35,810 bases of DNA, from contig NIVC01004758.1 in NCBI GenBank assembly GCA_002269645.1, positions 1-35,810 of the forward strand. The letters run 5' to 3'. Every line of letters starts with the position of its first letter. The stretch's first letter is position 1. Source of the stretch: Macrostomum lignano. Its lineage: Eukaryota. Of this stretch, positions 4,201 to 28,064 are shown piece after piece. A program made the position numbers and the translations under genes. The notes beneath the pieces are model-generated. The model was given only the letters and a program-made list of their open reading frames with translations. It made no database searches and was not told the DNA's origin.

Positions 4201-4764
4201 CACGTAAATATTATTGCTTTATGGCGGACTTTGCACTAAGATAGAGATGAATACATGTACGTTTCTCTAAACGGCTATTAAATCTGGATAACCTAGACTA
4301 CTATAGTAATAACTTACCTGCACAGCAGTGCAGACTATATCTAGTGTACACACTCACGGCATCGCTACAGCCCACACAACTTCATTAGCGGCAACAGCAG
4401 TCGCATTCTAATCTCCTGTCTACAGAACCTAGACGAGTATTTCTGTTCTGCAGTAGCCATGCCAAAGCAATTTTCATTGATGGCGTTTTCTATACGCACA
4501 AGATTACGAGTATTCTCGTCTACTTAGCCGTTTTTTCTTTAATATGAATTTCGAATTCTCACAACTAATATCGCATACTTTTGGCTGAGTACAGCCATTG
4601 CTCGAACGTTTTTGACAGACTGAGACGGCGGATGAATGCAGATAGAGGTTGGGGCGTGAGGAAGCTAGGAGGATGACTGAGAGATAGGTAGGTAGCTCCG
4701 AGGTGAATTTGCTAGGATGGAGACTAAGAGGGTCGTCAAGGATAAGTAAGCCAGGATTAAGAGG

Positions 4765-5157
4765 TAGTCAAGAGTGAGAGAGTCAGTCAAGAGTGAGAGG
4801 TAGACAAGAGTGAGAGGTAGTCAAGAGTGAGAGGTAGTCAAGCTAGAGTGAGAGGTAGTCAAGAGTGAGAGGTAGTCAAGAGTGAGAGGTAGACAAGAGT
4901 GAGAGGTAGACAAGAGTGAGAGGTAGTCAAGAGTGAGAGGTAGTCAAGAGTGAGAGGTAGACAAGAGTGAGAGGTAGTCAAGAGTGAGAGGTAGACAAGA
5001 GTGAGAGGTAGACAAGAGTGAGAGGTAGTCAAGAGTGAGAGGTAGTCAAGAGTGAGAGGTAGACAAGAGTGAGAGGTAGACAAGAGTGAGAGGTAGTCAA
5101 GAGTGAGAGGTAGTCAAGAGTGAGGTAGACAAGAGTGAGAGGTAGTCAAGAGTGAGG
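4765..5157. repeat. 17-bp minisatellite CAAGAGTGAGAGGTAG(T/A)
   Basis: More than 20 tandem units. Confidence 0.95.
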
Positions 5158-5380: not shown

Positions 5381-5566
5381 TCAGGCGTTCTGCTCATCGC
5401 GCAGGGGAATCACGTAGCGCTGCGGCACAGCCAGCGAGGGCGCGATGCCTTCAGGGTAGGACGGGTCCTCGAAGAACAGCTGGTAGTCTTCGTGCACCGA
5501 GGTCGGCGGCTCGTCCACCAGGGCGCGGTAGAAGCAGGTGGTCTGCGGGTACAGGGCCAGCACCAT
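5381..5566 (-). CDS. SGF29: SGF29 exon 6 (last): second Tudor domain, MVLALYPQTTCFYRAL...QRYVIPLRDEQNA*
   Basis: VLALYPQTTCFYRAL is the SGF29/CCDC101 signature; CAG acceptor at 5567-5569, phase 0. Confidence 0.97.
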   Translation of the reverse strand: MVLALYPQTTCFYRALVDEPPTSVHEDYQLFFEDPSYPEGIAPSLAVPQRYVIPLRDEQNA

Positions 5567-5581
5567 CTGGCGCGGCGGGAG

Positions 5582-6486
5582 TGGGCGATTCTCAGGGGCG
5601 GATTTGGCGATTCTCAGGGGCGGATTTGGCGATTCTCAGGGGCAGATTGGGATGATTCTCAGGGGCGGATTGGGATTATTCTCAGGGGCGGATTGGGATG
5701 ATTCTCAGGGGCGGATTGGGATGATTCTCAGGGGCGGATTGGGATGATTCTCAGGGGCGGATTGGGATGATTCTCAGGGGCGGATTGGGATGATTCTCAG
5801 GGGCGGATTGGGATGATTCTCAGGGGCGGATTGGGATGATTCTCAGGGGCGGATTGGGATGATTCTCAGGGGCGGATTGGGATGATTCTCAGGGGCGGAT
5901 TGGGATGATTCTCAGGGGCGGATTGGGATGATTCTCAGGGGCGGATTGGGATGATTCTCAGGGGCGGATTGGGATGATTCTCAGGGGCGGATTGGGATGA
6001 TTCTCAGGGGCGGATTGGGATGATTCTCAGGGGCGGATTGGGATGATTCTCAGGGGCGGATTGGGATGATTCTCAGGGGCGGATTGGGATGATTCTCAGG
6101 GGCGGATTGGGATGATTCTCAGGGGCGGATTGGGATGATTCTCAGGGGCGGATTGGGATGATTCTCAGGGGCGGATTTGGCGATTCTCAGGGGCGGATTT
6201 GGCGATTCTCAGAAGGCGTATTTGGCGATTCTCAGGGGCGGATTTGGCGATTCTCAGGGGCGGATTGAGATGATTCTCAGGGGCGGATTGGGGTGATTCT
6301 CAGGGGCGGATTTGGCGATTCTCAGAAGGCGTATTTGGCGATTCTCAGGGGCGGATCGGGGTGATTCTCAGAGGCGGATTGGGGTGATTCTCAGGGGCGG
6401 ATCGGGGTGATTCTCAGGGGCGGATTGGGGTGATTCTCAGGGGCGGATTGGGGTGATTCTCACGGGCGGATTGGGATGATTCTCAA
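5582..6486. repeat. 23-bp minisatellite GGGGCGGATTGGGATGATTCTCA filling SGF29 intron 5
   Basis: About 39 tandem units with a homogeneous centre and variant edges. Confidence 0.97.
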
Positions 6487-6548
6487 GGACGAGTTAAACA
6501 CAAGTATAGCGCAAAATCGATTCCAAAAATTCAAATCCGGAACCTCAC

Positions 6549-6642
6549 CTCGCCCTTTTTAAAGATCGCCTCCGGGTTGGTCTCCGGGTTGGCCTTCCAC
6601 AGCGGCAGGGGAATCACGCTGGTCTTGGGCAGCGAGTGCCGC
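6549..6642 (-). CDS. SGF29: SGF29 exon 5: RHSLPKTSVIPLPLWKANPETNPEAIFKKGE
   Basis: Matches the IPLPxWKANPETxPEAxF segment of SGF29. TAG acceptor and GTGAGG donor; the 94-bp length fits the phases of both neighbours. Not in the ORF track. Confidence 0.95.
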
Positions 6643-6872
6643 CTACAAGTCAAAATCCAGAGGCATCAGCTGAGTTAATTCAATGCGTGTCGGGGCTTGA
6701 GATGCGATCGGTGGGTCAGACAGATTGGCAGGAATGCAAAGTAAACAGCGGCATGCTGGAGGCAGCGGCAGTGGCGCAAACCGTGATGACAGAAAAACTG
6801 AATCAAAATCTTCCCATGCGGACCAGGACCTCTGGATGTCTGAACCAGGGACAGTCTCTCAGCAGGTAAGTA

Positions 6873-7445
6873 TTTAGCGAAGGTTTGGGTCTGTTTCCTG
6901 TCCAGGTTTCTAGAGTCCTTGGTGCAGGGGTAAACATTTAGCGAAGGTGTGGGTCTGCTTCTAGTCCAGGTTTCTAGAGTCCTTGGTGCAGGGGTAAACA
7001 TTTAGCGAAGGTGTGGGTCTGCTTCTAGTCCAGGTTTCTAGAGTCCTTGGTGCAGGGGTAAACATTTAGCGAAGGTGTGGGTCTGCTTCTAGTCCAGGTT
7101 TCTAGAGTCCTTGGTGCAGGGGTAAACATTTAGCGAAGGTGTGGGTCTGCTTCTAGTCCAGGTTTCTAGAGTCCTTGGTGCAGGGGTAAACATTTAGCGA
7201 AGGTGTGGGTCTGCTTCTAGTCCAGGTTTCTAGAGGTCCTTGGTGCAGTGGTAAGCATTTAGCGAAGGTGTGGATTCTGCTTCCAGTCCAGGTTTCTAGA
7301 GGTCCTTGGTGCAGGGGTAAACATTTAGAAAAGGTGTGGGTCTGTTTCCAGTCCAGATTTTTAGAGTCCTTGGTGCAGGCGTAAGCATTTAGCGAAAGTG
7401 TGGGTCTGCGTCCAGTCCAGGCCTCTAAAAGTCCTTGGTGTGGGT
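6873..7445. repeat. 64-bp minisatellite in SGF29 intron 4
   Basis: Unit starts at 6873, 6937, 7001 and so on; about 9 copies. Confidence 0.95.
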
Positions 7446-8131
7446 AAGCTCAAGGGCAATAACAGTCAGGCAATGCTTATGCACCAGAATCGATAGCATT
7501 AATAAAAAAAGCTAGTAAGTTAGCAGCACGCTAACTGTGAGAGTAACACGAGTACTTGGACCTGTCGGTTACTAAAGATATTCATTCAGAATTCTAAATT
7601 TAATCTAAGTTTAGATTAATAACAATTTTAGTTCTTATTTTTAAGAGTTTACATCAAGGTAGCTCAGACAGAACTGAACTGTTTGGTTCAAATTGGCGCG
7701 CAAAACTGCAAGCATGCAATCCGTTTAAACAAACGAGCGCGTCAGATCAAATATTTATGTACAAGGAAAACTAGCTAGCTAAGTGACACAAATATTTTAG
7801 GCTAGTTAGTATAACTGTACTACTAAGACAGAGGAGTGAGCAGTAGCATATGCGGCACCAGATTATGACAAAAATATTTTCGAGATTGGTTAAATGCAAC
7901 AGCGAATGCACTTACTCCGGTCTGCTTTCCGGTTGAGGGACGAGTGAAGGGTGGAGCGGTTAGAAGTGAAATCAATGAGCTTTGCGTGTACATCATTGTT
8001 TGCTTAATTAAATATCATTCAGCCGTTAACTACATGAATCCGAAAATTATTATACTGCATTAAAAAAACTTGCAAATGAATCTACTATAAGTAGCTGATT
8101 GATCAACATGTTTGACTAGCAAGTGATGGGC

Positions 8132-9187
8132 ACCAGATAAAGCATGGAAACGGGACAGGGGACAGGGGTGCCAGATAAAGCATGGAAACGGGACAGGAGT
8201 TTCCAGATAAAGCATGGAAACGGGACAGGGGTGCCAGATAAAGCATGGAAACGGGACAGGGGTGCCAGATAAAGCAAGGAAACGGGACAGGAGTTTCCAG
8301 ATAAAGCAAGGAAACGGGACAGGAGTTTCCAGATAAAGCAAGGAAACGGGACAGGAGTTTCCAGATAAAGCATGGAAACGGGACAGGAGTTTCCAGATAA
8401 AGCAAGGAAACGGGACAGGAGTTTCCAGATAAAGCAAGGAAACGGGACAGGAGTTTCCAGATAAATCATGGAAACGGGACAGGAGTGCCAGATAAAGCAT
8501 GGAAACGGGACATGGGTGCCAGATAAATCATGGAAACGGGACAGGGGTGCCAGATAAAGCATGGAAACGGGACATGGGTGCCAGATAAAGCATGGAAACG
8601 GGACAGGGGTGCCAGATAAAGCATGGAAACGGGACAGGGGTGCCAGATAAATCATGGAAACGGGAAATGGGTGCCAGATAAACCATGGAAACGGGACAGG
8701 GGTGCCAGATAAACCATGGAAACGGGACAGGGGTGCCAGATAAATCATGGAAACGGGACAGGAGTGCCAGATAAACCATGGAAACGGGACAGGGGTGCCA
8801 GATAAACCATGGAAACGGGACAGGGGTGCCAGATAAACCATGGAAACGGGACAGGGGTGCAAGATAAATCATGGAAACGGGACAGGGGTGCCAGATAAAC
8901 CATGGAAACGGGACAGGGGTGCCAGATAAACCATGGAAACGGGACATGGGTGCAAGATAAAGCATGGAAACGGGACAGGGGTGCAAGATAAAGCATGGAA
9001 ACGGGACAGGGGTGCAAGATAAAGCATGGAAACGGGACAGGGGTGCCAGATAAAGCATGGAAACGGAACAGGGGTGCCAGATAAAGCATGGAAACGGGAC
9101 ATGGGTGCCAGATAAAGCATGGAAACGGGACAGGGGTGCCAGATAAAGCATGGAAACGGGACATGGGTGCCAGATAAAGCATGGAAA
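8132..9187. repeat. 30/31-bp minisatellite CCAGATAAAGCATGGAAACGGGACAGG(GGTG/AGTTT) in SGF29 intron 4
   Basis: About 35 units arranged in blocks of variants. Confidence 0.97.
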
Positions 9188-9307
9188 CAAGTGCAGTTGC
9201 ATACACAGTGACACGCAGTTCGCCTGCGACAAGTGCCTGCCAACACAGACACAACTAGCCAAAAGCATGTCTAAACCAAAGACAAGAGCAGCACACAGCG
9301 AACTCAC

Positions 9308-9652
9308 TCCTTGCCCTCCTCGGCATCCACATCGGCCACGTGGTAGCGGCCGTTGGTCCACTGGTACTTGATGACCTCAGCCAGGATCCAGTTGTCCTCG
9401 CCGTCCTCCCTCACCAGGGCGGCGATCTTGTCCCTGGGCTGGCAGATGTAAGACGGGTCGGGGGCCCGGGAGCCGCACAGCGGGGGCGCCTCGTGGCCGG
9501 GTTCGCCAACCCACAGCGGCAGGGTGCGGGCCGCCTCCTGCAGCAGCGACATCAGGACGCCGCGGCGGACCACCGTCGGTGCGCTGTACTTGCTGAGCGA
9601 CTCCTTGAGCTCGCGAATTTCAACGATCAAGTCGAGAGCCTTTTTTAGGCAT
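9308..9652 (-). CDS. SGF29: SGF29 exon 4: CLKKALDLIVEIR...RRGVLMSLLQEAARTLPLWVG...WILAEVIKY...DVDAEEGKE
   Basis: RRGVLM.LL..A.TLPLW.G and WILAEV are SGF29 motifs; CAG acceptor at 9653-9655 and GTGAGT donor. Confidence 0.97.
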
Positions 9653-9831
9653 CTGAGGGTTGAGATATTTTTAACTAACAATTAACTAGCAGTTTATAAG
9701 CCAGTTCGATAATAATAACGTGAGAGAGAATCGGAGCCACTGATCTCAGAACACGCACACGCTCACACAAGGTGTACACCCGATGAAAACGGTACCCAAG
9801 ACAAAGAAGAGTCTCACAAAGTTACTTGCGT

Positions 9832-10080
9832 AGGGGGGCCGTAGCCGAGCGGTAGCGCAGCTGCTCTGGTGTGCCAGCGACCCAGGCTCGATTCCAAGTG
9901 CAGTCACATTAATTTGGGGCTGAATTGGAATCTCGACTTGGCTCTGCTCGTGCAACTGACGGCCTTGAGAGCCAACCCCCAAGGCGCAGAGAAGTGTACA
10001 TGCCTAACGATAATATAAAGTTAGGGCCGCTGTACACTCCTGTGCGAGTGTGTGCCTGCGTACGTATCCGCGCGCTTTTA
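9832..10080 (+). mobile_element. tRNA-derived SINE-like element in SGF29 intron 3
   Basis: A-box-like TAGCCGAGCGG and B-box-like GGCTCGATTCC at tRNA-type spacing, followed by a non-tRNA body; no complete cloverleaf recognised. Confidence 0.55.
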
Positions 10081-10379
10081 TGCCTGCTCAGGAGAGTCGG
10101 CGGAATGGGCAGTAATGCCTCTCGCCGGTTGTGTGCCTATGTCGCTTAAAGTGCGCCTCTAATAAAAAAAGTTAATTGCGTTGTTCCAGAGTTGTCTTAA
10201 AGTCATTGCAGGCAACACAGGTAAAGCAGGAAAGAAGTGACTCAATACGACTCTAAAACGAGATGTCACGGTACAAGTCGCCAAAACGTCGTCAAAGAAT
10301 CACTTGAGAGTCAATCTGAGGCTTTTTATTGTCTGCGACTCTGAAACGACTCTGGGGCCGTAGAGTCACGTCTGAGGCA

Positions 10380-10641
10380 CACTCTAGGCGCTTTAAGAGG
10401 CTGGAATCCATTTGCGGGACAGCGGACCCGAATTTCCCATCATCAGACAGTGTAAACACTCTAGGCGCTTTAAGAGGCTGGAATCCATTTGCGGGACAGC
10501 GGACCCGAATTTCCCATCATCAGACAGTGTAAACACTCTAGGCGCTTTAAGAGGCTGGAATCCATTTGCGGGACAGCGGACCCGAATTTCCCATCATCAG
10601 ACAGTGTAAACACTCTAGGCGCTTTAAGAGGCTGGAATCCA
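10380..10641. repeat. 77-bp tandem repeat, about 3.4 apparently identical copies
   Basis: Unit starts at 10380, 10457, 10534 and 10611. Confidence 0.95.
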
Positions 10642-10821
10642 TGTGCGTGAAGACCACGACAAGCCCAAGGCTGAGCTTCGTGCATACAGAAAGCAATGAC
10701 TCTGCGGACTACTCAGCCCAAGCAGAAGACGTTGGCAAAGTGACTAAAATTAAACTGCTAAGACTGGAGACAGAGACTGTCGGGTCAGATTACAAGCACA
10801 ATTAGCAAGTGAAGTACTCAC

Positions 10822-10894
10822 TCCTGCTCAGTTTCCGCATCGTTCATGGCCTGCATGTAGAGAGCCTGCAGCTTGTTCTTGGTCTGCGATTGGA
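10822..10894 (-). CDS. SGF29: SGF29 exon 3: QSQTKNKLQALYMQAMNDAETEQE
   Basis: Aligns by eye to the KLxxLYxxAxxDAExE segment. CAG and GTGAGT sites; 73 bp with consistent phases. Confidence 0.92.
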
Positions 10895-10944
10895 CTGTTC
10901 AATGATAAATAACAGGGCGGGCGGTTAGACAGGGGCTTGCGTTG

Positions 10945-12050
10945 TGCACGGGAGTCTGACACTTGAGCACTCAGCAGAACTGGTCACACAGGAGTCTGAC
11001 ACTTGAGCACTCAGCAGAACTGGTCACACAGGAGTCTGACATTTGAGCACTCAGCAGAACTGGTCACACAGCAGTCTGACACTTGAGCAGTCAGCAGAAC
11101 TGATCACACAGCAGTCTGACACTTGAGCACTCAGCAGAACTGGTCACACAGCAGTCTGACACTTGAGCACTCAGCAGAACTGGTCACACAGGAGTCTGAC
11201 ATTTGAGCACTCAGCAGAACTGGTCACACAGCAGTCTGACACTTGAGCAGTCAGCAGAACTGATCACACAGCAGTCTGACACTTGAGCACTCAGCAGAAC
11301 TGGTCACACAGCAGTCTGACACTTGAGCACTCAGCAGAACTGGTCACACAGCAGTCTGACACTTGAGCACTCAGCAGAACTGGTCACACAGCAGTCTGAC
11401 ACTTGAGCACTCAGCAGAACTAGTCACACAGGAGTCTGACACTTGAGCACTCAGCAGAACAGCTCAGGATTGGTCACACAGGAGTCTGACACTTGAGCAC
11501 TCAGCAGAACTGGTCACACAGGAGTCTGACACTTGAGCACTCAGCAGAACTGGTCACACAGGAGTCTGACACTTGAGCACTCAGCAGAACTGGTCACACA
11601 GCAGTCTGACACTTGAGCACTCAGCAGAACTGGTCACACAGGAGTCTGACACTTGAGCACTCAGCAGAACAGCTCAGGATTGGTCACACAGGAGTCTGAC
11701 ACTTGAGCACTCAGCAGAACTGGTCACACAGGAGTCTGACACTTGAGCACTCAGCAGAACTGGTCACACAGGAGTCTGACACTTGAGCACTCAGCAGAAC
11801 TGGTCACACAGCAGTCTGACACTTGAGCACTCAGCAGAACTGGTCACACAGGAGTCTGACACTTGAGCACTCAGCAGAACAGCTCAGGATTGGTCACACA
11901 GGAGTCTGACACTTGAGCACTCAGCAGAACTGGTCACACTGCAGTCTGACACTTGAGCACTCAGCAGAACAGCTCAGGATTGGTCACACAGGAGTCTGAC
12001 ACTTGAGCACTCAACAGAACAGCTCCAGTTCACACAAAAGTCTGACACTT
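10945..12050. repeat. 40-bp minisatellite (CACACAG(C/G)AGTCTGACACTTGAGCACTCAGCAGAACTGGT) with periodic 12-bp insertion variants, in SGF29 intron 2
   Basis: About 26 units; ACAGCTCAGGAT-containing variants recur. Confidence 0.97.
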
Positions 12051-12084
12051 CTCAACATAAAATCAAATGGCAAAATCTCCTCAC

Positions 12085-12160
12085 CTCGAGACTCAGTCCT
12101 GACTTTTTCGCAGATTTTATTGATTGAGTCAATTGTGATGTCGCTGCTGTTCTTCTCTTT
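12085..12160 (-). CDS. SGF29: SGF29 exon 2: KEKNSSDITIDSINKICEKVRTESR
   Basis: TAG acceptor and GTGAGG donor; 76 bp keeps the frame; corresponds to the N-terminal coiled coil. Confidence 0.85.
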
Positions 12161-12244
12161 CTAGAAATGATGAGACCCATTAAAAATTAGCAGATTGGGC
12201 ATTGGAATAAAAACGATGACATTCTAAGCACATGCTGAACTTAC

Positions 12245-12316
12245 CACAGCCTTTTTCAATAATGAATGCAGCTGTGCCAGCTTGTCCTGCAGGAGTTCTT
12301 CTTTCTGCTTGGCCAT
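12245..12316 (-). CDS. SGF29: SGF29 exon 1 (coding start): MAKQKEELLQDKLAQLHSLLKKAV
   Basis: ATG at 12316-12314, GTAAGT donor, 84-bp intron. The spliced ORF totals 846 bp, 281 aa. Confidence 0.85.
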
Positions 12317-12937
12317 GTCAGACAAAATCTATTTGAATTTTAGCTTAGATGAAACTGTAATTCCTGAAACATAATGAAAATGTTAAACTTATGTTATGTA
12401 TCATGGTTACGTGACCTAACCTATAATAACAAAAATTTAATATAAAATATTCAATAACAATATCCTTATTTTATTAAGTAATTAAATATATCAACTTTTA
12501 AACTATTATGTATTTTTTAATATGAATTTTGCCTGAATAAAAGTTTTTAGATTGTAACAAAAACAAAAAATTATGATTTTTTCCTTTAGGCCAAAGAATA
12601 AAGGGTTGTTAGTTACTAAATATTTAAATACTAAAATGTATATATACCTCTATTATTTTTTTTGTTGAAAATTTTAGTATATAAAATAAGAGGCTTAGCC
12701 TTAGGCCAAAATATAGAAATGGCAATTTACTAAAATATACAAATTTTAGTTTTTTTTATTGGCACCTTAAAACAATTGCAAAATACAAAAGACTTTTCTG
12801 TTATATTAATTTATTAAAAAGTATATCAAAGCCTAATCATTATGCTTAATCTACTATTTAATAGGACTAGGACTAGTTTTTATAAGCTCATTTAATATAA
12901 AGCTAAATGTATCATTAATTATTACCAATACAAAAAA

Positions 12938-13431
12938 GGCATAACTATGGTTGTGTTCGTTATATTATTTCTTGTGTTGAATTTGTTCCAGCGCATGTAG
13001 AAATAGCTCGTTATATTATTTTAAGTTAAAAAAGATGACCCACCACCAAAAAAGTTCAAATTCGAGTTTGAAGTCACGAGAAAGATAATTAGACGGGATA
13101 ATAGTGTGACACCCAGTAGAGAAAGTTGCCAAACACATTTGTGGATTTAGATGGCGCCACAGAAATTCCTGCAGATGAGTTTCAAATAGACCATCATCCG
13201 TCCCATACATGTTGCGAAACTTCGCCTTGCAATGCGCACATGTTCCCTCAATAGTGTTCGTATAAACCGTTGGGTCCTGGGGGTCCACAAAATGGAGCCA
13301 GTGGTTTACAGATGTGTGATTTGGCAGTGCATTTGTAGGAAGAGGAGCCGATGGTCGTCCAGCCATTTCTATGTAAGCTGGAACAAATTCAAAACAAGAA
13401 ATAATATAATGAACAAAACCATAGTTATGCC
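12938..13431 (-). mobile_element. Internally deleted Merlin (IS1595/ISXO2-like) DNA transposon, 494 bp, with about 75-bp imperfect TIRs and a transposase C-terminal fragment
   Basis: Ends GGCATAACTATGG.../...CCATAGTTATGCC. The internal minus-strand peptide HTSVNHWLHFVDP.DP.VYTNTIEG..AH.K.KFR.MYG.....F.THLQEFLWR follows the ISXO2-type VNH...FV...TN.IE...EF.WR pattern. Confidence 0.8.
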
Positions 13432-13841
13432 AAAAAATCATTTGACACAATGTATCTTTTGTGTTATATATGCTGAGAGATATACCCTAATATATATTGA
13501 AAAATGGTAAGACCCTTGTTGTATGCCAGGAAATCTTGGCATACATGTCGCCTTCTGAACTATGGGCCTTGAGTTCTTCTAGCAATAGGGCTACAATCAA
13601 TGAGTTCAATTATTATATTTATGGCTCTGGGATATCTTAAGGGAGGCTGCCTTCCTATTGGTATTAGCTTATTATATTGGCTTTGCATTTAAAGACAATT
13701 TATGCTAAAACTTACCAAAAACATAAGTTCAATTTTTTGTATGCTCATAAGTGTCACAGTTTTTAAAGTCATTTCTATAAAAAGATAATAGGCCTATAGT
13801 TTATTGTTGTCCCAATGAAAGTCAAATAAATATTTTTGGTT

Positions 13842-13943
13842 ATCTTCAAGTTTCGTTCGTTTAATTCCAACACCCACCCCCACCACCCTTGAATAGAGGG
13901 CGAAATAATTCCGGAAATAATTAAACGAACGAAACTTGAAGAT
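13842..13943. repeat. Perfect 25-bp inverted repeat with a 52-bp spacer (hairpin or mini-MITE)
   Basis: ATCTTCAAGTTTCGTTCGTTTAATT (13842-13866) is the exact reverse complement of 13919-13943. Confidence 0.85.
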
Positions 13944-14489
13944 TGCCATATTTTTAATTTTAAAGTTTTTCTTTTAGGCCTAGTTAATGAAAAAAGAAAA
14001 AAATATTGAAGAAAAAGCCTTGGTGAACTAAGAACATTTGCCCATGGTCATAACAGCATTAACTAGCATAATCCATAATATTAATCAAATTCTAATCTTA
14101 CCAGCCACATTTAGTGACATTTTATTGAAAGTCTATTTCTCATATAAAAAACGTCAAATAATTCATTAGCAAAGAACACTGAAGCAAAGTACATTTTTAT
14201 TGAAAATCTCGATCGATTAATTAGGCATGCATGTATATTATTTTAATTATTAAATTAAACAAGTATACTCACTGAACTAAAATAATAATTTATATTTTTA
14301 ATCTCAGTAAAAGTCGAGATTTGAATTTTGGTTTTCAAATTTTGTTACATGTACCATAACTCATAAAAATAAAAACTTGAACTTATGTTCCAAAAAATAA
14401 TATAATACTATAATGATAAATGAACATTTCTTTTCTTAAGCTTTATTTATGTTTAAAAATATGTTTAAACCAGAACTTCTCTTTCTATT

Positions 14490-14820
14490 TTTTCGCCAGT
14501 TTAAAAATAGAATAACAATTTCGGACTGTTTCTCTTATTATTTCTGAACTTATACTTTACGTGGTTACGTCGACTGCTTAAATTGTTGTCAGGCTCACCG
14601 TGTAGCGTTCGTGATTGTGAACTTGCTTAGACACCTGATAAGTCTTTAATTACATTTTTCAAGGATCATGCTCTTCGTCTTCGACAATCGACTTCAATGG
14701 TTTCAATCAAACAGCATTGAATAGGCCTAGGCCCTACGACTGAAAAAAGACGACTTTTAAACTAGGCCTATGTTCTTGTTGCAAGAATGAACTGTTGCCA
14801 AAGTTATTGGCGACCTTTAA
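14490..14820. promoter_or_regulatory. Candidate bidirectional promoter for SGF29 and shugoshin (CpG-retaining patch)
   Basis: 14 CpGs in about 330 bp inside an otherwise CpG-poor region between divergent genes; a minus-strand donor-like CG|GTGAGC lies at 14598. Promoter role is inference. Confidence 0.45.
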
Positions 14821-15277
14821 CACAAGTTCCAGAGTCAGACAAGGCATGAAAGGGTTATCAATATTAAGTAATATATACAATTGATCACTTTTGGAGCCAT
14901 AGGCCCTAGGCCTAATAGAAATGCATCGATAGACACTTGTGTTTGCAAGTGCGCAGGCAGTTAAACTTTGATCCTACATGAGCTGATGAGCAGCTGCTAG
15001 CTGCATAGAATACTAGAAACACATTTTCATGCTCATTGATGGGCATAGTTAGGCCTAGGCTTAACCTAACTTTATTAGGTTATTTGTTATTCTTTGAGAT
15101 ATAAAAGAGTTTTTGTTTTATGCAGTTTTGATTTTGCAGTATATAATTTTGGCTCTGCCCAAGGTTGTCATATTCTATATTGTCATATATAGTTTACAAG
15201 GAAAGCAACTAAACTAAATTATCTAAATTGTTATTAATATTAATCTTAGCATTTTATGCTGAATGAATATAAAGAAA

Positions 15278-16002
15278 GGAAGTGCTTATCCCCACAGTCC
15301 CGTGCTGATAATTCCAATTTTATCCACAAATCCATGTCAATAATTTCTAGCTTATCCCCACAGCAGCTTATTTAAAATAATAGCTGTCACCATTCAAGTC
15401 TATATAAGCCATGTCAATAATTACAATTTTAACCACATTTTAACCATAATTTTCAGCTTATCCCATGGCTAAGATTGTTCAATTGTTTGTGTTTAGTTTT
15501 GTGTATTGATGTTAAATTGATATTTTTATTATTATTAAAATATTATTAGGCCCATAATATAGTTGAATTTTGCAAGTCTTATTTCTCTCAATCCTTGAGA
15601 TGTTTGGTTGTTCTAAGTAGGCCTAAAGCCAGCAGCTAAGCAAATATTTAAAATTAACCCTTTTAATGACAAAAAGTTTTAACAAAGTACTTACTTGATA
15701 CTATTTAGTATTCAATATATATAGTTTATTTAGAAGATTTATAAAATAGTGAAAACAAAAATATAGTTTTTGAACATATTCATTTCAAGGTTCTTTATTC
15801 CAATAAGCTGCCATAAGGATAAGCTGGAAATTATTGACATGGATCTATGTGGATAAAATTGGAATTATTAACACGGCTTATAGACTTGAATGGTAGTAGC
15901 TATTTCAATAAGCTACCATGGGGATAAGCTGAAAATTATTGACATAGATCTATGTGGATAAAATTGGAATTATCGGCATGGGACTGTGGGGATAAGCACT
16001 TC
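15278..16002. mobile_element. Non-autonomous foldback / Mutator-like element, 725 bp, with about 200-bp internally repetitive TIRs
   Basis: The left end GAAGTGCTTATCCCCACAGTCCC... mirrors the right end ...GGGACTGTGGGGATAAGCACTTC. A flanking direct repeat TATAAAGAAA lies at 15268-15277 and 16003-16012. Confidence 0.85.
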
Positions 16003-16539
16003 TATAAAGAAATGAATATAATATCTTATACCTTCTTTTTCCTACCTTCCAAATACAATTTCCTAAGTATAAAAAGTGGCAAGTCTCTTCTTTAAAATGT
16101 CTTAAATTGCAATTAATTTTGTTTTATATTTTAAGAGATATATGTACACTTAAGTAGAGAGAAATTGGTCATAGACTTATAAAAGACCAAATAAGGCTAA
16201 ACCAGTTATGTTAAAAAAATCTTCACTGTTGCTTAATTTTGATCATTAGTCATCAAATAGATAGCCTTAGCCTATACATTCAAAGACTAGGAAACAACAT
16301 GCTATGCTATATTTATACTTTGGAGATCTAGGTGCAAAGCAGTTGATATTCTATTTTCCTTGTAATTTCAAACTGCACATAGAGACAATTCTATTAGCAC
16401 AATGGTAGTGAACAAGTTAGTAAACAAGTTCAGTCGTGGAAGAACAAACATGAACTAGAACTAAACTGACCAAAGGTCCATGCCAATGGCAACCTTGTCT
16501 TGGATATATTCTTGACGTGATTGATAAAGACTGTTATCA

Positions 16540-16840
16540 AAGTATCCATAAACTCTATCCTACTACTCCATTAGAAAGATAATGATGAATAGGCAGGTAA
16601 ACAACTTTAAGGATGGAAGAACTGACATGAGTGAACATAATAAGGTTAGGATAAGATCTATGATACTGGCCTAATGGATCATATTCTCAACTTAATCAAT
16701 GAAGACTGCCACCAAAGCATCGACAAAATAGCCAATAGACTAGATTGTTCAGTCTAGATAGTTTACAAGTATTTGCAAAATATTATTCATGTCATGCTAA
16801 ATGCCTATTGGGTTTCCTAATGGCTCATTAAGGATATGAG
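16540..16840 (+). pseudogene. Highly decayed mariner-type transposase N-terminal fragment
   Basis: The broken frames FKDGRTDM and ILNLINEDCHQSIDKIANRLDCSV*IVYKYL...WVS*WL resemble the mariner HTH region ending at the WVPxxL motif; stops and a frameshift are present. Confidence 0.5.
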
Positions 16841-18827
16841 GTAGATTGTCTATATAGAAGGCTTGTGTCTAGGCTCTGTAAGTCTATGACCAATCTTCCT
16901 TTACTCAAGTACATATATCTCTTAAAATATAGATCCAAATTGATGGCACTTTAAGTCATTTAAAAGAAAAGACTTGCTGCTTTCAAACAATACCAAACTT
17001 TTGTAAATGCAACTTACCAAACGTCTGCTACAAGTAAAACTAATACTACTTTCCGAATAATACCCTTATAAATATGTGGTATATGCCTTTTTTGGTCAAA
17101 TTTGTCATATTTAATTGTTTTAGTTTTATAGATTTGGTCAAGTTATAATATGACAATTTTGAATATAATGATTTTGACTGTACTCTATAATTTCTTATTC
17201 TTAATTTGATGATAATTTTAAATATACTTAAGGGATATAGGTCATTTTAGTGACAAGTCATTTTGGTGACAAGTTGCTTCTATGAGATAAGTATGACAGA
17301 CATGCTCTACCTTATGGTAAAAATGAAAGATTCAAAGAGTTGAGCATTTTAGTGATAGTAGACACTTTAAAATATCAGTTTGTAATCATTTTGTTAAAAT
17401 TAAAGTTGTGTATAAGGGCTATTTCAAAAAGTCTATCAAAAAATAAATGCATATATAACTTAAAAAATAATCAAGCTAGGCCTACAATTATATATTGTTT
17501 TTGTGCAGATTGTTTTGAGTTTTTCCTAGAGTATTCAGATACAAACATAGAGGATCCTCCTTGTAAAAAGCCCACCAAGAAAAACAAAAAATTATTCACC
17601 AAATTTGAAAAGCATACAAATATGAAAAATCAAGACTATATCTATGCAGTGTCTAAATAAAATGAAATGAATTAACATTTTACTATTTTAGCAAACCCTG
17701 GAAATTTTAGGTTTCATATCAGTTAAGATTTTTAAGATAATTTTCTGCTTAAAAACCATAATCGCTGTTACCAAAAAGGTCTTTTTCTTGTCATTAGGCC
17801 CTAAAATGACTATAGACCTGCTCAAATACATAGGCATAGACCTAGCAATAGAAATCATGCACCTAGGCCAGTATCCATGCTTTGTAGTGCCTATGCTTTT
17901 GGAGTTTTAGTTGTTAGTCATTTTTTATCTGTTGTTTTGTTATCCAAAGTGTCAACCCCATTAAAAAAAGTAACTTGTGCCATAGGTTGACATTGACAAT
18001 CATTTTGTCTACTGCCAGTTTGTCTACTATTTTTTGTCTATGATAATACAATATTATGGTGGCCAGAATGTGTGACTGGCAAGTGCCAATGCAGATTTAT
18101 TTGAACCCTCCCCAACCTCCATCTAGCTCTAATGGGATAGGTGCACTAAGCTAGTTGGCTCACTAAGCTGGGGGGTTTGCAAAGTCTATTGTGCCACCTT
18201 TTTGTACTTCCTTAGGCTGCTCAATCTTGTGCTATTTGTAAATCTAAATGAATGTACAAATTAGCTCTAAATCTTCATTGCCATTACATCTATTAAATTT
18301 AAACTTAAACTATTAAACTTAATATAGTCATTTTGTCTATCACAAAATATTAAATATAACATTTTTAGTGTTAAGACTCATCATAAGCTTATAATAAGAG
18401 AGGCCTAGTAGTTAGATAATAAACTTACTTTTTTATTATTATAACTATTATAACTAAAAATATTTGCATTCTTTTGTCTTATAATATCCACACCCAATTG
18501 ATTACTTGTGTCAATTTTGTTATACAATAAGAAAATTATACAATAAGAAAATTGCAAAATTGCAAAAAAATGAATTGTAGCTTTCTACAGCACAATCCTT
18601 ATATTCACTTTCGTTATATGATACCCTCAATAGAAAATTTCTTTAATGATTATGAATGTGCAAATTGTAAAACTCATTTTGTACTTTTCACAAGCTTCTA
18701 CTTGAAAATTTTCATTTCAGAAATAAATTCAAGGTTTCAAAGGGTCAGTTTTAAAGAAAGCTTAATTTATCATAGCAGAAAAATCACTCAAGTACCAAAG
18801 CGCTAAGCCTCTGCCAACTAAAAACCC

Positions 18828-21092
18828 ATGCCATTAGCAAGCGCGGCTCTGAAGCACCGCACTCAGTATCATGGCGGCGCCAGTGCCAGGCCTGGCAGCT
18901 CCGGGCGCGCCATTGCTGGCGCATCCAACTTGGCCAGACACGTGCGAGATGAAGGTCTGAAAGAGAACAGGATTGCACCGCTGATGAGCTGCAATGCTGC
19001 AGCTGCTGGCAAGGAGAGGGCCCTGCAAGCTCAGCAGAAGCTGGCGCACGATCAGGTGGCGAGTCTCACTGCCCGAGTGAAGCAGCTTGAGCTGGAGAAC
19101 AGCAGCCTGCGCAGGTGCCTTGCTAATGTTAACAATTGTCGGGCCATGTTTATGGAGGTGCATTCTCAGGCTATCCTGTCGCTTGAGCACCTGTCAAAAT
19201 GTGTGCAGCTCAGCCAGTCTGCTCTGGATGAGCTGGCCCTGGCCGCGCCACCAACCAAGGATGCGGCTGCTGCCGAGTCTCGTCTTCCAGTGGCTACCGT
19301 TGCCGCAACTGTCAGTCAAGATTTGCAGCCCCAATCCACTACTACTACTACTACTCAAAGTAGCAGTGAGAGCGGTGCAGCTGTGCCAAAATCTACTACA
19401 GCTGTGCTGAAGTCCCGTCGAACTGTTGTGATCGAACCGGCGCCTGGCCTTGCCGCATCGGGTGAGTCCAGCAGCGAGTCATTGGTTATCAAACAGCAGC
19501 TGTCAAGGCAGCTGACGCCGCTGATGGAGTGCTCCGAGGCGGCTGGGAGGGCCAGCTTGAATTGCTCAGCGAGAGGATCCTTGCCGAATGATCAGGTCGC
19601 GTTTCTTGAGCAGGATAAACCTCAACAACAACAGCAGGATAAACCTCAACAACAACATCAGGATAAACCTCAACAACAACAACAGGATAAACCTCAACAA
19701 CAACAGGATAAACCTCAACAACAACAGCAGGATAAACCTCAACAACAACAACAGGATAAACCTCAACAACAACAGCAGGATAAACCTCAACAACAACAAC
19801 AGGATAAACCTCAACAACAACAGCAGGATAAACCTCAACAACAACAGCAGGATAAACCTCAACAACAACATCAGGATAAACCTCAACAACAACAGCAGGA
19901 TAAACCTCAACAACAACATCAGGATAAACCTCAACAACAACAGCAGGATAAACCACAACAACAGCAGCTGAATCAGTCCAATCAGAGTCGGCATGAGAAG
20001 TCGCGCCACTCTCTGCCACACGAGTCAATGGAAGTTCAGCAGGAGTTGAACCAGCTGCCAGAGATACCGGCGGAACAGAACAAGCCCGCAGCTGGGTTGC
20101 AACGGAAGGCTTTAAAGTTAAAGCCGCAGCCAAAGCAGCAGCGGAGGCCTCAAAGGCGCAGTCAATTCGTTCGAAACCAGGAGCAGAAATCGCAAGTCCA
20201 CCAGCGGTCAGCCGAAGAGCTTCAAAACCCGACGGAGAACCCTTTCATCCCCCGGCACCGGCTGGCTCGAACTCCGCCTAAGTGCGGCGCCGACACCAGC
20301 GCTGCTGCCAGCGGCAACGGCAACGCCACTTTCGACCAGCTTTCACCGCCGTCTCCGCAGGCGCCGTCAGAGCCTCGGCCAGCGACGCTCTCGCCGACCT
20401 CATCGTTGAAGCTCATCGGCAAGCAGCTGGCGCCATCCATACAGCAGAGGCGCCCGGTCGCCAACCGCGCTGCTGGCAGTCACCAGCGTCGGGGAACCTT
20501 CGTCATCAACCAGCCTCCGCCATCCACAGCGACTCCATCGCCTCCCTCGCCGCCGCCACCTCCGTCGCCGCCAGCCATTGTCCTGGACGTTCGACACGCG
20601 CTTGTCTTGTCGCCGCCACCGCATCCGAGGCTGTCAACCTTGCCTGATCAGCCGGACTTCGCCGAGCTTCCCGATTGGCCGGACACTGCTCGAGCCTCCG
20701 TGTCCACCGCGATGGGTGACGCGGCCGCTTGCTCCTTGACAGCGAAGGTGCTGACTCGCGAGCTGCGCGTTGCTCCCAGGCCCTCCCTGCTGCCGAAGCC
20801 CCTGCTGTCTCCGCCGTCCGCGGCGAAGACCAGCGCGCCGCGCCGCTCGTCTCTGATGGCGCCGCCCGCCGCTGCCGACGAAGCGCCCGCCACCAAGCGG
20901 CATCGCCGGAAGCAGTCTTCAACCGCCACCACCGTCGCCTCGGCGGAATCGTCCGCTGCGTGCGCCGACCTGACCGGCGAGGCTGCCGCCGTCAACTCGT
21001 CAGCGCCTCTGCGGCCTCGCCGTCAACGAGCGGCGGCCGTCAACTACAAGGAGCCCAGCGTTAATACGAAACTGCGACGCTGCGACAAGTGA
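18828..21092 (+). CDS. SGO1: Shugoshin (SGO family), 754 aa, uninterrupted CDS
   Basis: The C-terminal RPRRQRAAAVNYKEPSVNTKLRRCD is the basic SGO motif. An N-terminal coiled coil (LTARVKQLELENSSLRR), a KEN sequence and a long S/P/Q-rich middle are present. SGO1 versus SGO2 cannot be resolved. Confidence 0.9.
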   Translation: MPLASAALKHRTQYHGGASARPGSSGRAIAGASNLARHVRDEGLKENRIAPLMSCNAAAAGKERALQAQQKLAHDQVASLTARVKQLELENSSLRRCLANVNNCRAMFMEVHSQAILSLEHLSKCVQLSQSALDELALAAPPTKDAAAAESRLPVATVAATVSQDLQPQSTTTTTTQSSSESGAAVPKSTTAVLKSRRTVVIEPAPGLAASGESSSESLVIKQQLSRQLTPLMECSEAAGRASLNCSARGSLPNDQVAFLEQDKPQQQQQDKPQQQHQDKPQQQQQDKPQQQQDKPQQQQQDKPQQQQQDKPQQQQQDKPQQQQQDKPQQQQQDKPQQQQQDKPQQQHQDKPQQQQQDKPQQQHQDKPQQQQQDKPQQQQLNQSNQSRHEKSRHSLPHESMEVQQELNQLPEIPAEQNKPAAGLQRKALKLKPQPKQQRRPQRRSQFVRNQEQKSQVHQRSAEELQNPTENPFIPRHRLARTPPKCGADTSAAASGNGNATFDQLSPPSPQAPSEPRPATLSPTSSLKLIGKQLAPSIQQRRPVANRAAGSHQRRGTFVINQPPPSTATPSPPSPPPPPSPPAIVLDVRHALVLSPPPHPRLSTLPDQPDFAELPDWPDTARASVSTAMGDAAACSLTAKVLTRELRVAPRPSLLPKPLLSPPSAAKTSAPRRSSLMAPPAAADEAPATKRHRRKQSSTATTVASAESSAACADLTGEAAAVNSSAPLRPRRQRAAAVNYKEPSVNTKLRRCDK
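19611..19967 (+). repeat. Coding 24-bp minisatellite, 15 units encoding QDKPQQQ(Q/H)
   Basis: CAGGATAAACCTCAACAACAACAG-type units; one unit is 21 bp; the frame is preserved. Confidence 0.97.
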
Positions 21093-21239
21093 TGGGGAAA
21101 TTTATGCGTATTTGGCTTGGTTTTTCCTACCTCTGAGGCATCCCTACCGGAACTTTAACCATTGGATGATTGCAACTAATGGGATAATCGTTAATATGTA
21201 AACTAGTTTCATAGTAACAGATAGCTTTGATTTAATTAA

Positions 21240-21392
21240 GGATTCTGATCCCCATAGCTCAATACGAGAGCTGCAATCACATCTGAGGATTCTGATCCCC
21301 ATAGCTCAATACGAGAGCTGCAATCATATCTGAGGATTCTGATCCCCATAGCTCAATACGAGAGCTGCAATCACATCTGAGGATTCTGATCC
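21240..21392. repeat. 47-bp tandem repeat, 3 copies plus a partial, downstream of the shugoshin stop
   Basis: Unit starts at 21240, 21287, 21334 and 21381. Confidence 0.95.
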
Positions 21393-21998
21393 TATCTTCC
21401 TGTCAGTATCTGTATGAAAAGTTGAACTATTAGTCTGAATTCCAACATCTTGGCTACAAGTCGTACAGCTCTGCTTGCTATCCATCTCTGAATTTAGTCT
21501 CTCTAGACTGCGTATGCAGTTGTAAACTGCAGGTGAATAACTGAAAAGTACATGCAGTCACTTAATTAGTTGAGTACTCTTGCAGTCTTTATTATTTGGC
21601 TTTATACTGCATTACGCCAATTGTTTCAAAGCAATTTTAAATTTTCCTACTTATTTTTACACCTTGACACAATCATTATTTAAGCTACCAAGTAGTGTGC
21701 TTTGCAGCATTTCCACACATCTCATGCTTTATACAAAAGGTATTAATTTATTTATGCCATTTATCAGTTCATCAGCTCCGGTGCTAGACTGACCAACAAT
21801 TATCTACGGCAACTACTTTTACTCTAACCAGTCTTCACTTTGGTATGCTACGCATTAATAACCTAAATATAAAGCATGTCAAAAATTTGCGTTTAAAAAC
21901 TTTTCATATATAAGAAAGTGAAATCAGTTGTTTTCGATAATTATATATATTTACTGAATTGCTTATAAGACGGCTCTTCCACAAGTATCAATAGGTAA

Positions 21999-22625
21999 CC
22001 CTCCCAGCTTCTCAGACAGCCGCCCTCCCAGCTCCTCAAACAGGCACCCTCCCAGCTACTCAAACAGCCGCCCTCCCAGCTCCTCAAACAGCACCCTCCA
22101 AGCTACTCAAACAGCCGCCCTCCCAGCTCCTCAAACAGGCACCCTCCCAGCTCCTCAAACAGCGCCCTCCCAGCTCCTCAAACAGCCGCCCTCCCAGCTC
22201 CTCAAACAGGCACCCTCCCAGCTCCTCAAACAGGCACCCTCCCAGCTCCTCAAACAGGCACCCTCCCAGCTCCTCAAACAGGCACCCTCCCAGCTACTCA
22301 AACAGCCGCCCTCCCAGCTCCTCAAACAGGCACCCTCCCAGCTTCTCAGACAGCCACCCTCCAGCTCCTCAAACAACCGCCCTCCCAGCTCCCCAAACAG
22401 CCGCCCTCCAAACTCCTATATACTCAGACAGCACCCTCGTAGATACTCAGACAGGCACCCTCATAGATGCTCAGACAGGCACCCTCATAGATGTCTCAGA
22501 CAGCCACCCTCATAGATGCTCAGACAGCCACCCTCATAGATGTCTCAGACAGGCACCCTCATAGATGCTCAGACAGCCTCCCTCATAGATGCTCAGACAG
22601 CCTCCTCATAGATGCTCAGACAGAC
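21999..22625. repeat. Two abutting about 24-bp minisatellites (CCTCCCAGCTCCTCAAACAGGCAC, then CAGACAGGCACCCTCATAGATGCT) upstream of MKK4
   Basis: The unit switches at about 22430 and both share CAGGCACCCTC. A donor-like AG|GTAACC at 21995 suggests a 5'UTR intron. Confidence 0.9.
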
Positions 22626-24879: not shown

Positions 24880-25291
24880 CAGTCCAGATGTACGCAGAAG
24901 GCAGAGAGCCCCCACCCCCAAACCACCAGTCCAGATGTACGCAGAAGGCAGAGAGCCCCCACCCACTTCTCCAGTCCAGATGTTCGCAGAAGGCAGAGAG
25001 CCCCCACCTCACTCCGCCAGTCCAGATGTTAACCCTAACCCTAACCCTAACCCTAACCCAGTCCAGATGTACGCATAAGGCAAAGAGTCCCCACCCCACT
25101 CCGCCAGTCCAGATGTACGCAGAAGGCAGAGTCCCCACCCCACTCCGCCAGTCCAGATGTACGCAGAAGGCAGAGTCCCCACCCCACTCCACCAGTCCAG
25201 ATGTACGCAGAAGGCAGAGTCCCCACCCCACTCCGCCAGTCCAGATGTACGCAGAAGGCAGAGTCCCCACCCCACTCCGCCAGTCCAGATG
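24880..25291. repeat. About 44-bp minisatellite CCAGTCCAGATGTACGCAGAAGGCAGAG... with an embedded (TAACCC)5 tract at 25030-25059
   Basis: About 9 units, read directly. Confidence 0.93.
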
Positions 25292-25654
25292 TTTTCTTGA
25301 TTGCATGCTCTGCGCAGATCTTTTCGGCTAAATGATGAACCGACTATTTTTGTTTGTTTTCTTGCGCATGTTTCCTGCTGTTATTTGATAGCAGAGATGA
25401 TGAGTTTCTTGTTTAGCTATTTTTTACGTTTCTGGTGCAACACTGCGCAACATTTGCACACAATTTTTACGGTGCATTTTCGCATGCAATTAAGATTAAT
25501 GACACCGCAGTTTCGTGTCTGGAAAATTTAAACTCGTATTTGAATTCGCTGAATATTGCCGCGGCTTGCAAGCTTGGATTTTCGTATGGTTTTTAAAAAT
25601 ATTATTATGGTTAAATTTCTGCCTAAAACTGACACAATCATCCATCGGTCACCC

Positions 25655-26135
25655 AACTCGGACACTCATACACGGGACACCCCACTCGGAGACTCATTTA
25701 CCGGACACCCACTCGGACACCCCACTCAGACACTCATACACTGGCCACCCCACTCGGAGACTCATTTACCGGACACCCCATTTGGACACTCATACACCGG
25801 ACACCCCACTCGGACACCCTCTCGGACACTCATTCACCGGAAACCCCACTCGGACACTCATTCACCGGACACCCCACTCGGACACCCTCACGGACACTCA
25901 TTCACCGGAAACCCCACTCGGACACCCTCTCGGACACTCATTCGCCGGAAACCCCACTCGGACACTCATTCACCGGACACCCCACTCGGACACTTTCTCG
26001 GACACTCATTCACCGGAAACCCCACTCGGACACTCATTCACCGGAAACCCCACTCGGACACTCATTCACCGGACACCCCACTCGGACACCCTCTCGGACA
26101 CTCATTCACCGGAAACCCCACTCGGACACCCATCA
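25655..26135. repeat. Modular minisatellite CCCCACTCGGACACTCATTCACCGGAAA (28 bp) with optional 12-bp modules
   Basis: Explains both repetitive ORFs at 25515-26158. Confidence 0.93.
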
Positions 26136-26679: not shown

Positions 26680-27230
26680 AAGGATTCTGGGATTCTAGTT
26701 GGGGATTTAAGGATTAGGATTCTAGCTATGGATTCTGAGATTCTAGCTGGGGATTCTGGGAATCTAGTTAGGGATTCTGGGATTCTAGTTGGGGATTCTG
26801 GGATTCTAGTTGGGGACTTAAAGATTGGGATTCTAGCTAGGGATTCTAGGATTCTGGGATTCTAGTTAGGGATTTATGGATTGGGATTCTAGGTAGGGAT
26901 GCTGGGATTGTAGTAGGTGATTCTGGGATTCTAGTTGGGGATTCTGGGATTCTAGTTGGGGATTCTGGGATTCTAGTTGGGGATTCTGGGATTCTAGTTG
27001 GGGATTCTGGGATTCTAGTTGGGGATTCTGGGATTCTAGTTGGGGATTCTGGGATTCTAGTTGGGGATTCTGGGATTCTAGTTGGGGATTCTGGGATTCT
27101 AGTTAAGGATTCTGGGATTCTAGTTGGGGATTCTGGGATTCTAGTTAGGGATTCTATGATTCTAGTTGGGGATTCTGGCATTCTAGTTGGGGATTCTGGG
27201 ATTCTATTTAAGGATTCTGGGATTCTAGCT
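26680..27230. repeat. 21-bp minisatellite GGGATTCTAGTTGGGGATTCT
   Basis: More than 20 units with a homogeneous core. Confidence 0.95.
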
Positions 27231-27361
27231 TGCATTCTACTCGTAAAACCGTTAAATCGATTCGCTATCTTCATAACTTTGCACTTTATGCAAGACAGTT
27301 AATTGCTTCTATTAAAAGAAAGTCAAATCCAAAAGCAGACGCAGCACCAGCAGAAGCAGCA

Positions 27362-27994: not shown

Positions 27995-28064
27995 GTGAGC
28001 TCGGCATTTCTTATCCTCGGCTCGGGTCAGCACTCTCTGCTTCAGCAACTAGCTCTCAGATCCT

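Follow-up and report, generated by a model that had tools for sequence, protein, structure and literature searches.

Loss of CpG dinucleotides as a footprint of germline methylation is textbook knowledge, and both the mosaic methylomes of invertebrates and the methylation of transposons in some lineages are well described. DNMT1 and DNMT3 have been lost in most flatworm lineages. Clusters of 8-bp palindromes at divergent housekeeping promoters are also familiar, for example the Drosophila DRE motif (TATCGATA), which is bound by DREF/BEAF-32. Macrostomum lignano is reported to retain DNMT1 and DNMT3 together with low-level 5-methylcytosine (5mC) (PMC11292947, PMC9246332, PMC10658182), and a 2022 review describes the methylation pattern along the genome as unknown for any free-living flatworm (PMC9246332). 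The species is described as a hidden polyploid (PMC10468722). Here, we analyse contig NIVC01004758.1 of M. lignano (assembly GCA_002269645.1, NIVC01, which is the Mlig_3_7 assembly; PMC5730564) over its 35,810 nucleotides, referred to as the window, with emphasis on the AT-rich and CpG-depleted spacer that separates the divergent genes for SGF29 and shugoshin. The CpGs of this spacer are both depleted and hypermutable, and the bodies of the flanking genes are spared. We read the spacer as a transposon-littered intergenic region eroded by methylation, a reading that we hold with somewhat more confidence than doubt.

CpG loss and CpG hypermutability in the spacer

The edges of the spacer are sharp and lie where GC-rich coding sequence starts. 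Maximum-likelihood change points in GC content fall at 12324 and 18800, which are 8 and 28 bp from the ATGs of SGF29 (12316) and shugoshin (18828), respectively, so that the domain corresponds to the entire ~6.5-kb spacer between the two start codons. Since the flanking gene bodies are unaffected, the sharp bounds that had been claimed in an earlier reading made from the letters alone (the sequence-only reading) are real, and they are simply the two start codons. The domain and its two main compositional parts are as follows.

12324 to 18800, no strand: AT-rich, CpG-depleted domain (GC change points, composition, CpG counts and three contigs)
14821 to 18780, no strand: most CpG-eroded part, with 12 CpGs against 92 expected (observed/expected ratio, O/E, 0.13)
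14490 to 14820, no strand: CpG-retaining patch, with 14 CpGs against 11.8 expected (O/E 1.19 over 331 bp)

Between 12400 and 18780 the GC content is 30.4% and 53 CpGs are present against 147.3 expected (O/E 0.36). The deficit is deepest at 16021–18780, with seven CpGs against 62.95 expected (O/E 0.11; Poisson P = 4e-19 versus composition and 1.6e-12 versus the window-wide O/E of 0.72). Segment 12400–12950 is also strongly depleted (O/E 0.16), and depletion over 12400–14489 as a whole is milder (O/E 0.61). The CpGs in the left half of the spacer are grouped, with 15 in 12958–13356, six in 13854–13930 and 14 in the patch. All of the CpG counts and GC values given in the sequence-only reading (roughly 30% GC, seven CpGs against roughly 60 expected, and 14 CpGs in the patch) were reproduced, and its argument that low GC alone does not explain the loss of CpG holds as well. 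The AT-rich control at 33400–34300 (GC 37.4%) has an O/E of 1.24, AT-rich control segments within the window range from 0.54 to 1.24, and in five published M. lignano promoter clones (initial 400 bp of each) and the EFA 3′ untranslated region (UTR) the O/E lies between 0.45 and 1.16, with a GC content of 33–39% in five of these six pieces. The lowest of the published pieces is the housekeeping EFA promoter (six CpGs against 13 expected). Because these controls and promoter pieces keep their CpGs, AT-richness by itself is insufficient to account for the loss observed here. The remaining CpG-poor stretches of the window are all tandem arrays with a CpG-free unit, and the spacer is the sole non-satellite CpG-depleted region in the window.

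The assembly contains three copies of the locus, namely the window and two further contigs, L001 and L002, that carry the block with both flanks at identities of 99.6% and 98.6–98.9%. The interval is present on NIVC01001932.1 and NIVC01001933.1. Substitutions were counted between the window and L002 over 12320–16620. L001 is nearly identical to the window and cannot polarize the changes, so that exchanges between CpG and TpG/CpA are treated as undirected. Of the 46 substitutions in this interval, 12 are CpG–TpG/CpA transitions, counted over ~48 CpGs, and non-CpG sites differ at 0.74% (Fisher p = 8e-13 for CpG versus non-CpG bases). The adjacent SGF29 gene body served as a control (1485 aligned bp outside repeats, containing 85 CpGs). 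It has the same divergence of 0.74%, with only one CpG transition at the 85 CpGs (p = 1.7e-5 versus the spacer); its non-exonic part has one at 51 (p = 7e-4). CpG bases in the spacer change ~14.5 times faster per base than other C/G positions, and the equilibrium calculated from these rates for 14821–18780 is ~7 CpGs, with 12 present.

A regional excess of change of this magnitude that is specific to CpG is the classical signature of 5mC deamination. Taken with the reported DNMT1, DNMT3 and low-level 5mC in this species, it leads us to accept the deamination mechanism that the sequence-only reading had put forward for the loss of CpG. The same reading had also invoked the pattern of gene-body methylation, and here the data are contrary: SGF29 exon 3 and the following intron have a CpG O/E of 0.9–1.0, and values for the shugoshin open reading frame (ORF) lie between 0.57 and 1.3 once its CpG-free repeat is set aside. 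The SGF29 gene body is neither CpG-depleted nor CpG-hypermutable and the body of shugoshin is CpG-normal.

According to the preferred reading, the spacer would be old, AT-rich, transposon-littered noncoding DNA in which CpGs are methylated in the germline, now or until recently. Deamination of 5mC would convert CpG to TpG/CpA ~15 times faster per base than other C/G changes occur, and the oldest parts (14.8–18.8 and 12.4–12.95 kb) would have run down to near mutational equilibrium (O/E ~0.13). An IS1595-like transposon fragment in the left half would be a young insertion that is still losing its CpGs, and a patch of ~200–330 bp at 14.5–14.8 kb would possibly be a protected, unmethylated regulatory island.

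Several points weigh against this reading. The composition, the boundaries, the transposon content and the regional CpG hypermutability are observed directly, whereas the methylation, its action in the germline and the protection of the patch are inferred from sequence alone. The hypermutability comes from one pairwise comparison with 13 events at a single locus, and the most depleted 2.2 kb (16621–18790) is identical between the copies and hence uninformative. The exonic share of the CpGs in the flank could be held by selection, although the non-exonic part still differs from the spacer at p = 7e-4. Apart from the transposase homology, the repeat status that we assign to the inverted-repeat elements is based on structure within the window. 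Finally, the excess of TpG and CpA that deamination should leave, proposed as a check in the sequence-only reading, is present but modest: O/E values are 1.18 and 1.17 in the depleted part, which overlap the range of seven AT-rich control segments (~0.84–1.44, mostly 0.9–1.3), so that this measure alone does not decide.

Divergence between the window and L002 is itself uneven along the locus. It amounts to ~1.1% over 12320–16620 and drops to one substitution in ~5 kb (16621–22000, through the shugoshin ORF), which is suggestive of a recent tract of gene conversion or recombination with its end near 16.6 kb.

The central patch and possible transcription of the spacer

The CpG-retaining patch stands out clearly from the rest of the block (P = 6e-8 for its CpG excess). 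Its GC content of 37.8% is below the 50% asked of a CpG island, and its O/E is above the minimum of 0.6 that applies to islands of 200 bp or longer. Transitions between the copies affect one of its 14 CpGs and 11 of 34 elsewhere in the block (p = 0.08, post hoc). When the short inverted-repeat structure at its right end is left out, the core of the patch (14494–14689) has no transitions at 11 CpGs, against 12 of 37 in the remainder (p = 0.04, a comparison chosen after seeing the data). The fewer changes at its CpGs are a weak hint of the protection that the sequence-only reading had postulated, both p values being post hoc and marginal. From its sequence, the patch may be a candidate unmethylated island or regulatory element. 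The patch also contains TACGTGGTTACGTCGAC at 14556–14575, where L002 has an additional 8-bp copy of ACGTGGTA.

Around the patch, an 8-bp palindrome is repeated far beyond expectation, and a splice-acceptor motif occurs close to each start codon.

13789 to 17484, no strand: palindrome TAGGCCTA in eight copies, the first letters of which are at 13789, 13975, 14722, 14763, 14907, 15050, 15618 and 17477
12364 to 12369, minus strand: acceptor motif TTTCAG, 47 nt upstream of the start codon of SGF29
18715 to 18720, plus strand: acceptor motif TTTCAG, 107 nt upstream of the start codon of shugoshin

These features bear on the alternative that the patch is an unmethylated bidirectional promoter, with flanks that belong to the transcribed 5′ parts of SGF29 and shugoshin (leader, outron or intron) and owe their methylation to this transcription, as in gene-body methylation. 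We consider this account unlikely. The retention of CpGs in the patch and their lower rate of change would be expected from it. So would the two acceptors: [T/C]TNCAG is the published spliced-leader (SL) trans-splice acceptor motif of M. lignano, the conserved and stem-cell genes of which are mostly SL trans-spliced (PMC8629364). Since the motif is scarce in the block (approximately once per 800 bp per strand) and yet is found near both ATGs, both pre-mRNAs probably begin upstream, inside the AT-rich DNA. Some of the DNA upstream of both ATGs is thus probably transcribed, to judge from these motifs, and the one on the shugoshin side could be either a cis-splice or an SL trans-splice acceptor.

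The strand composition points the opposite way. The block beside the patch has AT skews of −0.025 and +0.005, i.e. no strand skew on either side, whereas the two non-satellite introns of SGF29 have an excess of T over A of ~0.10–0.12 on the sense strand. As the baseline consists of these two introns only, the absence of skew argues no more than weakly against the spacer having been transcribed over a long time. Other observations also speak against a promoter flanked by transcribed, methylated leaders. The gene bodies show neither depletion nor hypermutability, contrary to canonical transcription-linked methylation, and transposon remnants occur in the block, where one of them makes up a CpG-rich piece. 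The patch is 2.2 kb away from the ATG of SGF29 and 4.0 kb from that of shugoshin, whereas at most 2 kb upstream of the site at which transcription starts suffices for the tested M. lignano promoters (PMC5730564). Its GC content is only 38% and its conservation is not raised, being like that of its surroundings (three substitutions in 331 bp).

The palindrome TAGGCCTA occurs eight times against 0.46 expected (none of 100 shuffles reaches eight) and nowhere else in the window. Seven of the eight copies lie within 13789–15625, around the patch, which speaks in favour of a promoter there. The shorter TAGGCC is present in 15 copies against 0.85 expected, and one copy of TAGGCCTA carries a 5-bp CTAGG insertion in L002. 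The flanks of the copies are unrelated, so that the copies do not derive from one repeated element. The palindrome may be a protein-binding site kept by selection; equally well, it may represent transposon ends (GGCC termini, in a family that targets TA or TWA) or excision footprints (TA+GG+CC+TA). As a source, the Tc1 copy of the window was considered and is ruled out by its ends (CACTG…CAGTG). The arrangement resembles that of the Drosophila DRE in that a TA-flanked 8-bp palindrome is clustered over ~1.8 kb between divergent housekeeping-type genes. It differs from the DRE in that TAGGCCTA is known here from the sequence of one window and fits transposon termini or excision footprints equally well.

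A further motif, GGTTACGT, is located at 12401–12415, ~90 bp upstream of the SGF29 ATG, and holds the sole CpG of 12320–12950. Its recurrence near this ATG and in the patch was dropped from consideration, as at least two matches were obtained in seven of 100 shuffles.

Transposon debris in the spacer and explanations without methylation

Four structures with features of mobile or foldback DNA are recognized in the spacer.

12938 to 13431, minus strand: probable internally deleted IS1595/ISXO2 (Merlin-like) DNA transposon of 494 bp (terminal inverted repeats and transposase homology)
13837 to 13948, no strand: hairpin element, the 25-bp stem of which is perfectly paired (z = −7.2 for a DNA fold of −27.6 kcal/mol)
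15279 to 16002, no strand: foldback element that contains subrepeats and has two arms (~185 nt) matching at 81%
16073 to 16983, no strand: element with inverted repeats at its borders; the arms (~105 nt) match at 83% and are free of CpG

The terminal inverted repeats of the IS1595-like element are 71 nt long (12938–13008 and 13361–13431), are 89% matched and start with 5′-GG. They enclose a stop-free fragment of ~114 codons on the minus strand (13016–13360), which corresponds to roughly the last, C-terminal third of the transposase. An exhaustive HMMER search (phmmer) with this fragment gave 327 homologues, with a best E value of 5e-23; a word-indexed search with the same fragment gave no matches. 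Its direct match to Pfam is weak (E = 0.3), and those homologues of 200–330 amino acids that were tested carry PF12762 (DDE_Tnp_IS1595, ISXO2-like) at the matching position. The element is flanked by runs of A (acAAAAAA|GG…CC|AAAAAAtc), the low complexity of which masks any target-site duplication of 8–9 bp. The transposase fragment is CpG-rich (O/E 0.7–0.8), and 4–5 of the ~17 CpGs in 12958–13356 differ between the copies. Its CpGs are hypermutable, so that their retention reflects youth and not protection. The density of CpG within the spacer thus partly tracks the age of its pieces.

The hairpin has a 52-nt C-rich loop and holds six CpGs; one CpG of its stem is TpG in L002. It could be a miniature inverted-repeat transposable element (MITE) or a small hairpin-RNA locus. 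A candidate MITE at 14722–14914 with TAGGCCTAGGCCC termini was considered and rejected, as its 26-nt arms consist mostly of the near-palindromic motif and only seven of 11 positions match beyond it. RNA genes were found neither by Rfam (gathering thresholds) nor by ARAGORN across the whole window. One arm of the foldback element still has three CpGs, and at each of these the other arm reads TpG or CpA, which indicates that they were lost in place, after the element had formed. Together, the IS1595-like element and the three inverted-repeat structures make up ~2.2 of the 6.5 kb; about two thirds of the block has no recognizable structure. Comparison of the block with itself and with the rest of the window gave internal inverted and direct repeats only.

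With this content, the block might be thought to consist of AT-rich, CpG-poor mobile or foreign DNA that brought its composition with it, without any methylation at the locus. The transposase fragment, the three inverted-repeat structures and the sharp edges are in keeping with such inheritance, which we regard as quite unlikely on other grounds. After the copies separated, loss at the remaining CpGs has continued at ~15 times the rate of change at other C/G sites, different CpGs have disappeared from the two arms of the foldback element since its formation, and the identifiable transposon fragment is the richest part of the block in CpG and not the poorest. Moreover, the block is a mosaic of unrelated pieces. 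No long terminal repeats (LTRs) or other terminal repeats span it, which rules out one long insertion, an outcome that the sequence-only reading had named as a refutation of its own account.

A second explanation that dispenses with methylation appeals to context-dependent mutation in AT-rich DNA, through easier melting and cytosine deamination, or to selection against CpG. The depleted DNA is indeed the most AT-rich of the window. Nevertheless, we judge this to be very unlikely, as other AT-rich segments and the published M. lignano promoters keep an O/E of 0.5–1.2 and the excess is specific to CpG, with non-CpG C/G sites in the same DNA changing ~14.5 times more slowly. An assembly artefact, either a chimeric join or a contaminant, might be suspected from the abrupt change in composition at both edges but is scarcely credible, as the block is found, with 98.6–99.6% identity and with these two genes on either side, on three contigs that were assembled separately; this excludes the chimeric join, which had also been raised in the sequence-only reading as a way in which it might fail. 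Even when pooled, the explanations without methylation seem unlikely to us.

The flanking genes, the contig and comparison with known systems

The divergent arrangement of the genes on either side of the block, as proposed in the sequence-only reading, agrees with both domain matches and orthologues.

5384 to 12316, minus strand: SGF29 gene (PF07039 SGF29_Tudor gene call, exon reading and orthologue search)
18828 to 21092, plus strand: shugoshin ORF of 754 amino acids in a single exon (PF07557 Shugoshin_C, E = 5.6e-9)

The exons of SGF29 were placed at approximately 5384–5566, 6552–6643, 9309–9672, 12086–12161 and 12245–12316, with the ATG at 12316–12314. The resulting model of 264 amino acids matches SGF29 orthologues with E values of ~1e-70 to 1e-80, and its difference from the 281 amino acids annotated points to one small exon or a boundary. 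Minisatellites fill the introns. A search with the SGF29 protein gave no other Macrostomum genome among its matches. The shugoshin protein of 754 amino acids is found in identical form on two sister contigs of GCA_002269645.1. Its ORF contains a tandem repeat at 19609–19968 with ~15 copies of a 24-bp (eight-residue) unit that encodes (Q)QQQDKPQ, as identified by TRF; the genome copies differ by 48-bp indels in this repeat. The annotation on the present contig covers only the last 435 residues of shugoshin, the full ORF being intact here and present in the annotation of the sister contigs.

Tandem arrays take up much of the contig, the introns of SGF29 included. Minisatellite arrays at 10947–12020, 28064–28818, 596–1284, 4760–5156 and 26849–27228 are nearly CpG-free, with CpA/TpG at an O/E of up to 2.3, and those at 5587–6485 and 25634–26133 keep their CpGs. 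Hexamers of the telomeric TTAGGG type are present as (GGTTAG)x9 at the start of the contig (21–75) and internally as (TAACCC)x5 at 25030–25059. A Tc1/mariner transposon (31562–33122) has ORFs with DDE_3 and HTH domains, ends in CACTG…CAGTG and has a CpG O/E of 0.5–0.7. It sits at a TA in a 40-bp satellite array (31290–31561 and 33123–33225) with a clean TA target-site duplication. In a search with its transposase for further M. lignano loci, the best matches were 58% identical and from other organisms. An ORF at 22612–23409 matches a protein kinase domain (PF00069, E = 1.5e-14), of which it has the N-terminal portion; its product is annotated with 238 amino acids here and with 236 and 332 on the sister contigs. 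An annotated gene of 793 amino acids at 27323–30948 has an ADD domain that is rich in cysteine and of the kind present in ATRX and DNMT3 (PF17981), and carries the CpG-free 28-bp tandem array at 28064–28818 and CAG repeats. This gene (27.3–30.9 kb) was considered as a DNMT3 and rejected, since Pfam gives the ADD domain only, with no methyltransferase or helicase domain in the ORFs tested.

Three kinds of known system are closest to the locus. A vertebrate CpG island at a bidirectional promoter shares with the patch a stretch of O/E >1 within CpG-eroded DNA between divergent genes, together with a hint of lower CpG mutability. The patch differs in its GC content of 38%, which is not at least 50%, in its distances of 2.2 and 4.0 kb from the start codons and in its overlap with a short inverted-repeat structure at the right end. 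CpG methylation directed at transposons and heterochromatin, as in vertebrates, some invertebrates and plants, resembles the spacer as a whole in several respects: noncoding DNA that is in part transposon-derived, CpG-specific hypermutability, erosion that has gone further in old pieces than in a younger insertion, and the sparing of neighbouring genes. In the present case, however, only one element has been assigned to a family and the intact Tc1/mariner copy is only mildly depleted (O/E 0.5–0.7). Methylation in M. lignano might be aimed generally at AT-rich, transposon-laden intergenic DNA and not at gene bodies, with protected islands marked by clusters of TAGGCCTA that would bind a promoter or boundary factor; we think this unlikely.

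The locus provides sequence-only evidence for a regional, CpG-specific mutation process in M. lignano that spares the bodies of two housekeeping-type genes. As the hidden polyploidy of the species results in thousands of duplicated contig pairs, CpG transition rates could be used to map the history of germline methylation without bisulfite data. The third comparison is with the mosaic methylomes of invertebrates such as Ciona, honeybee, Nematostella, oyster and annelids (background in PMC11292947 and PMC9246332). Depleted compartments lie beside CpG-normal ones both there and here, the depletion is ascribed to deamination of germline 5mC, and DNMT1 and DNMT3 are reported to be retained. In those genomes, however, the depleted compartment consists of the bodies of broadly expressed genes, whereas at this locus it is an intergenic, transposon-bearing spacer between gene bodies that are CpG-normal. 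The novelty, which is modest and confined to one locus, is that the footprint falls on intergenic transposon-bearing DNA and not on gene bodies. Methylation directed at such DNA would, if real, be out of the ordinary in an invertebrate that has DNMT1 and DNMT3 and, if it held genome-wide, would represent a departure from the gene-body pattern that is taken to be ancestral for bilaterians.

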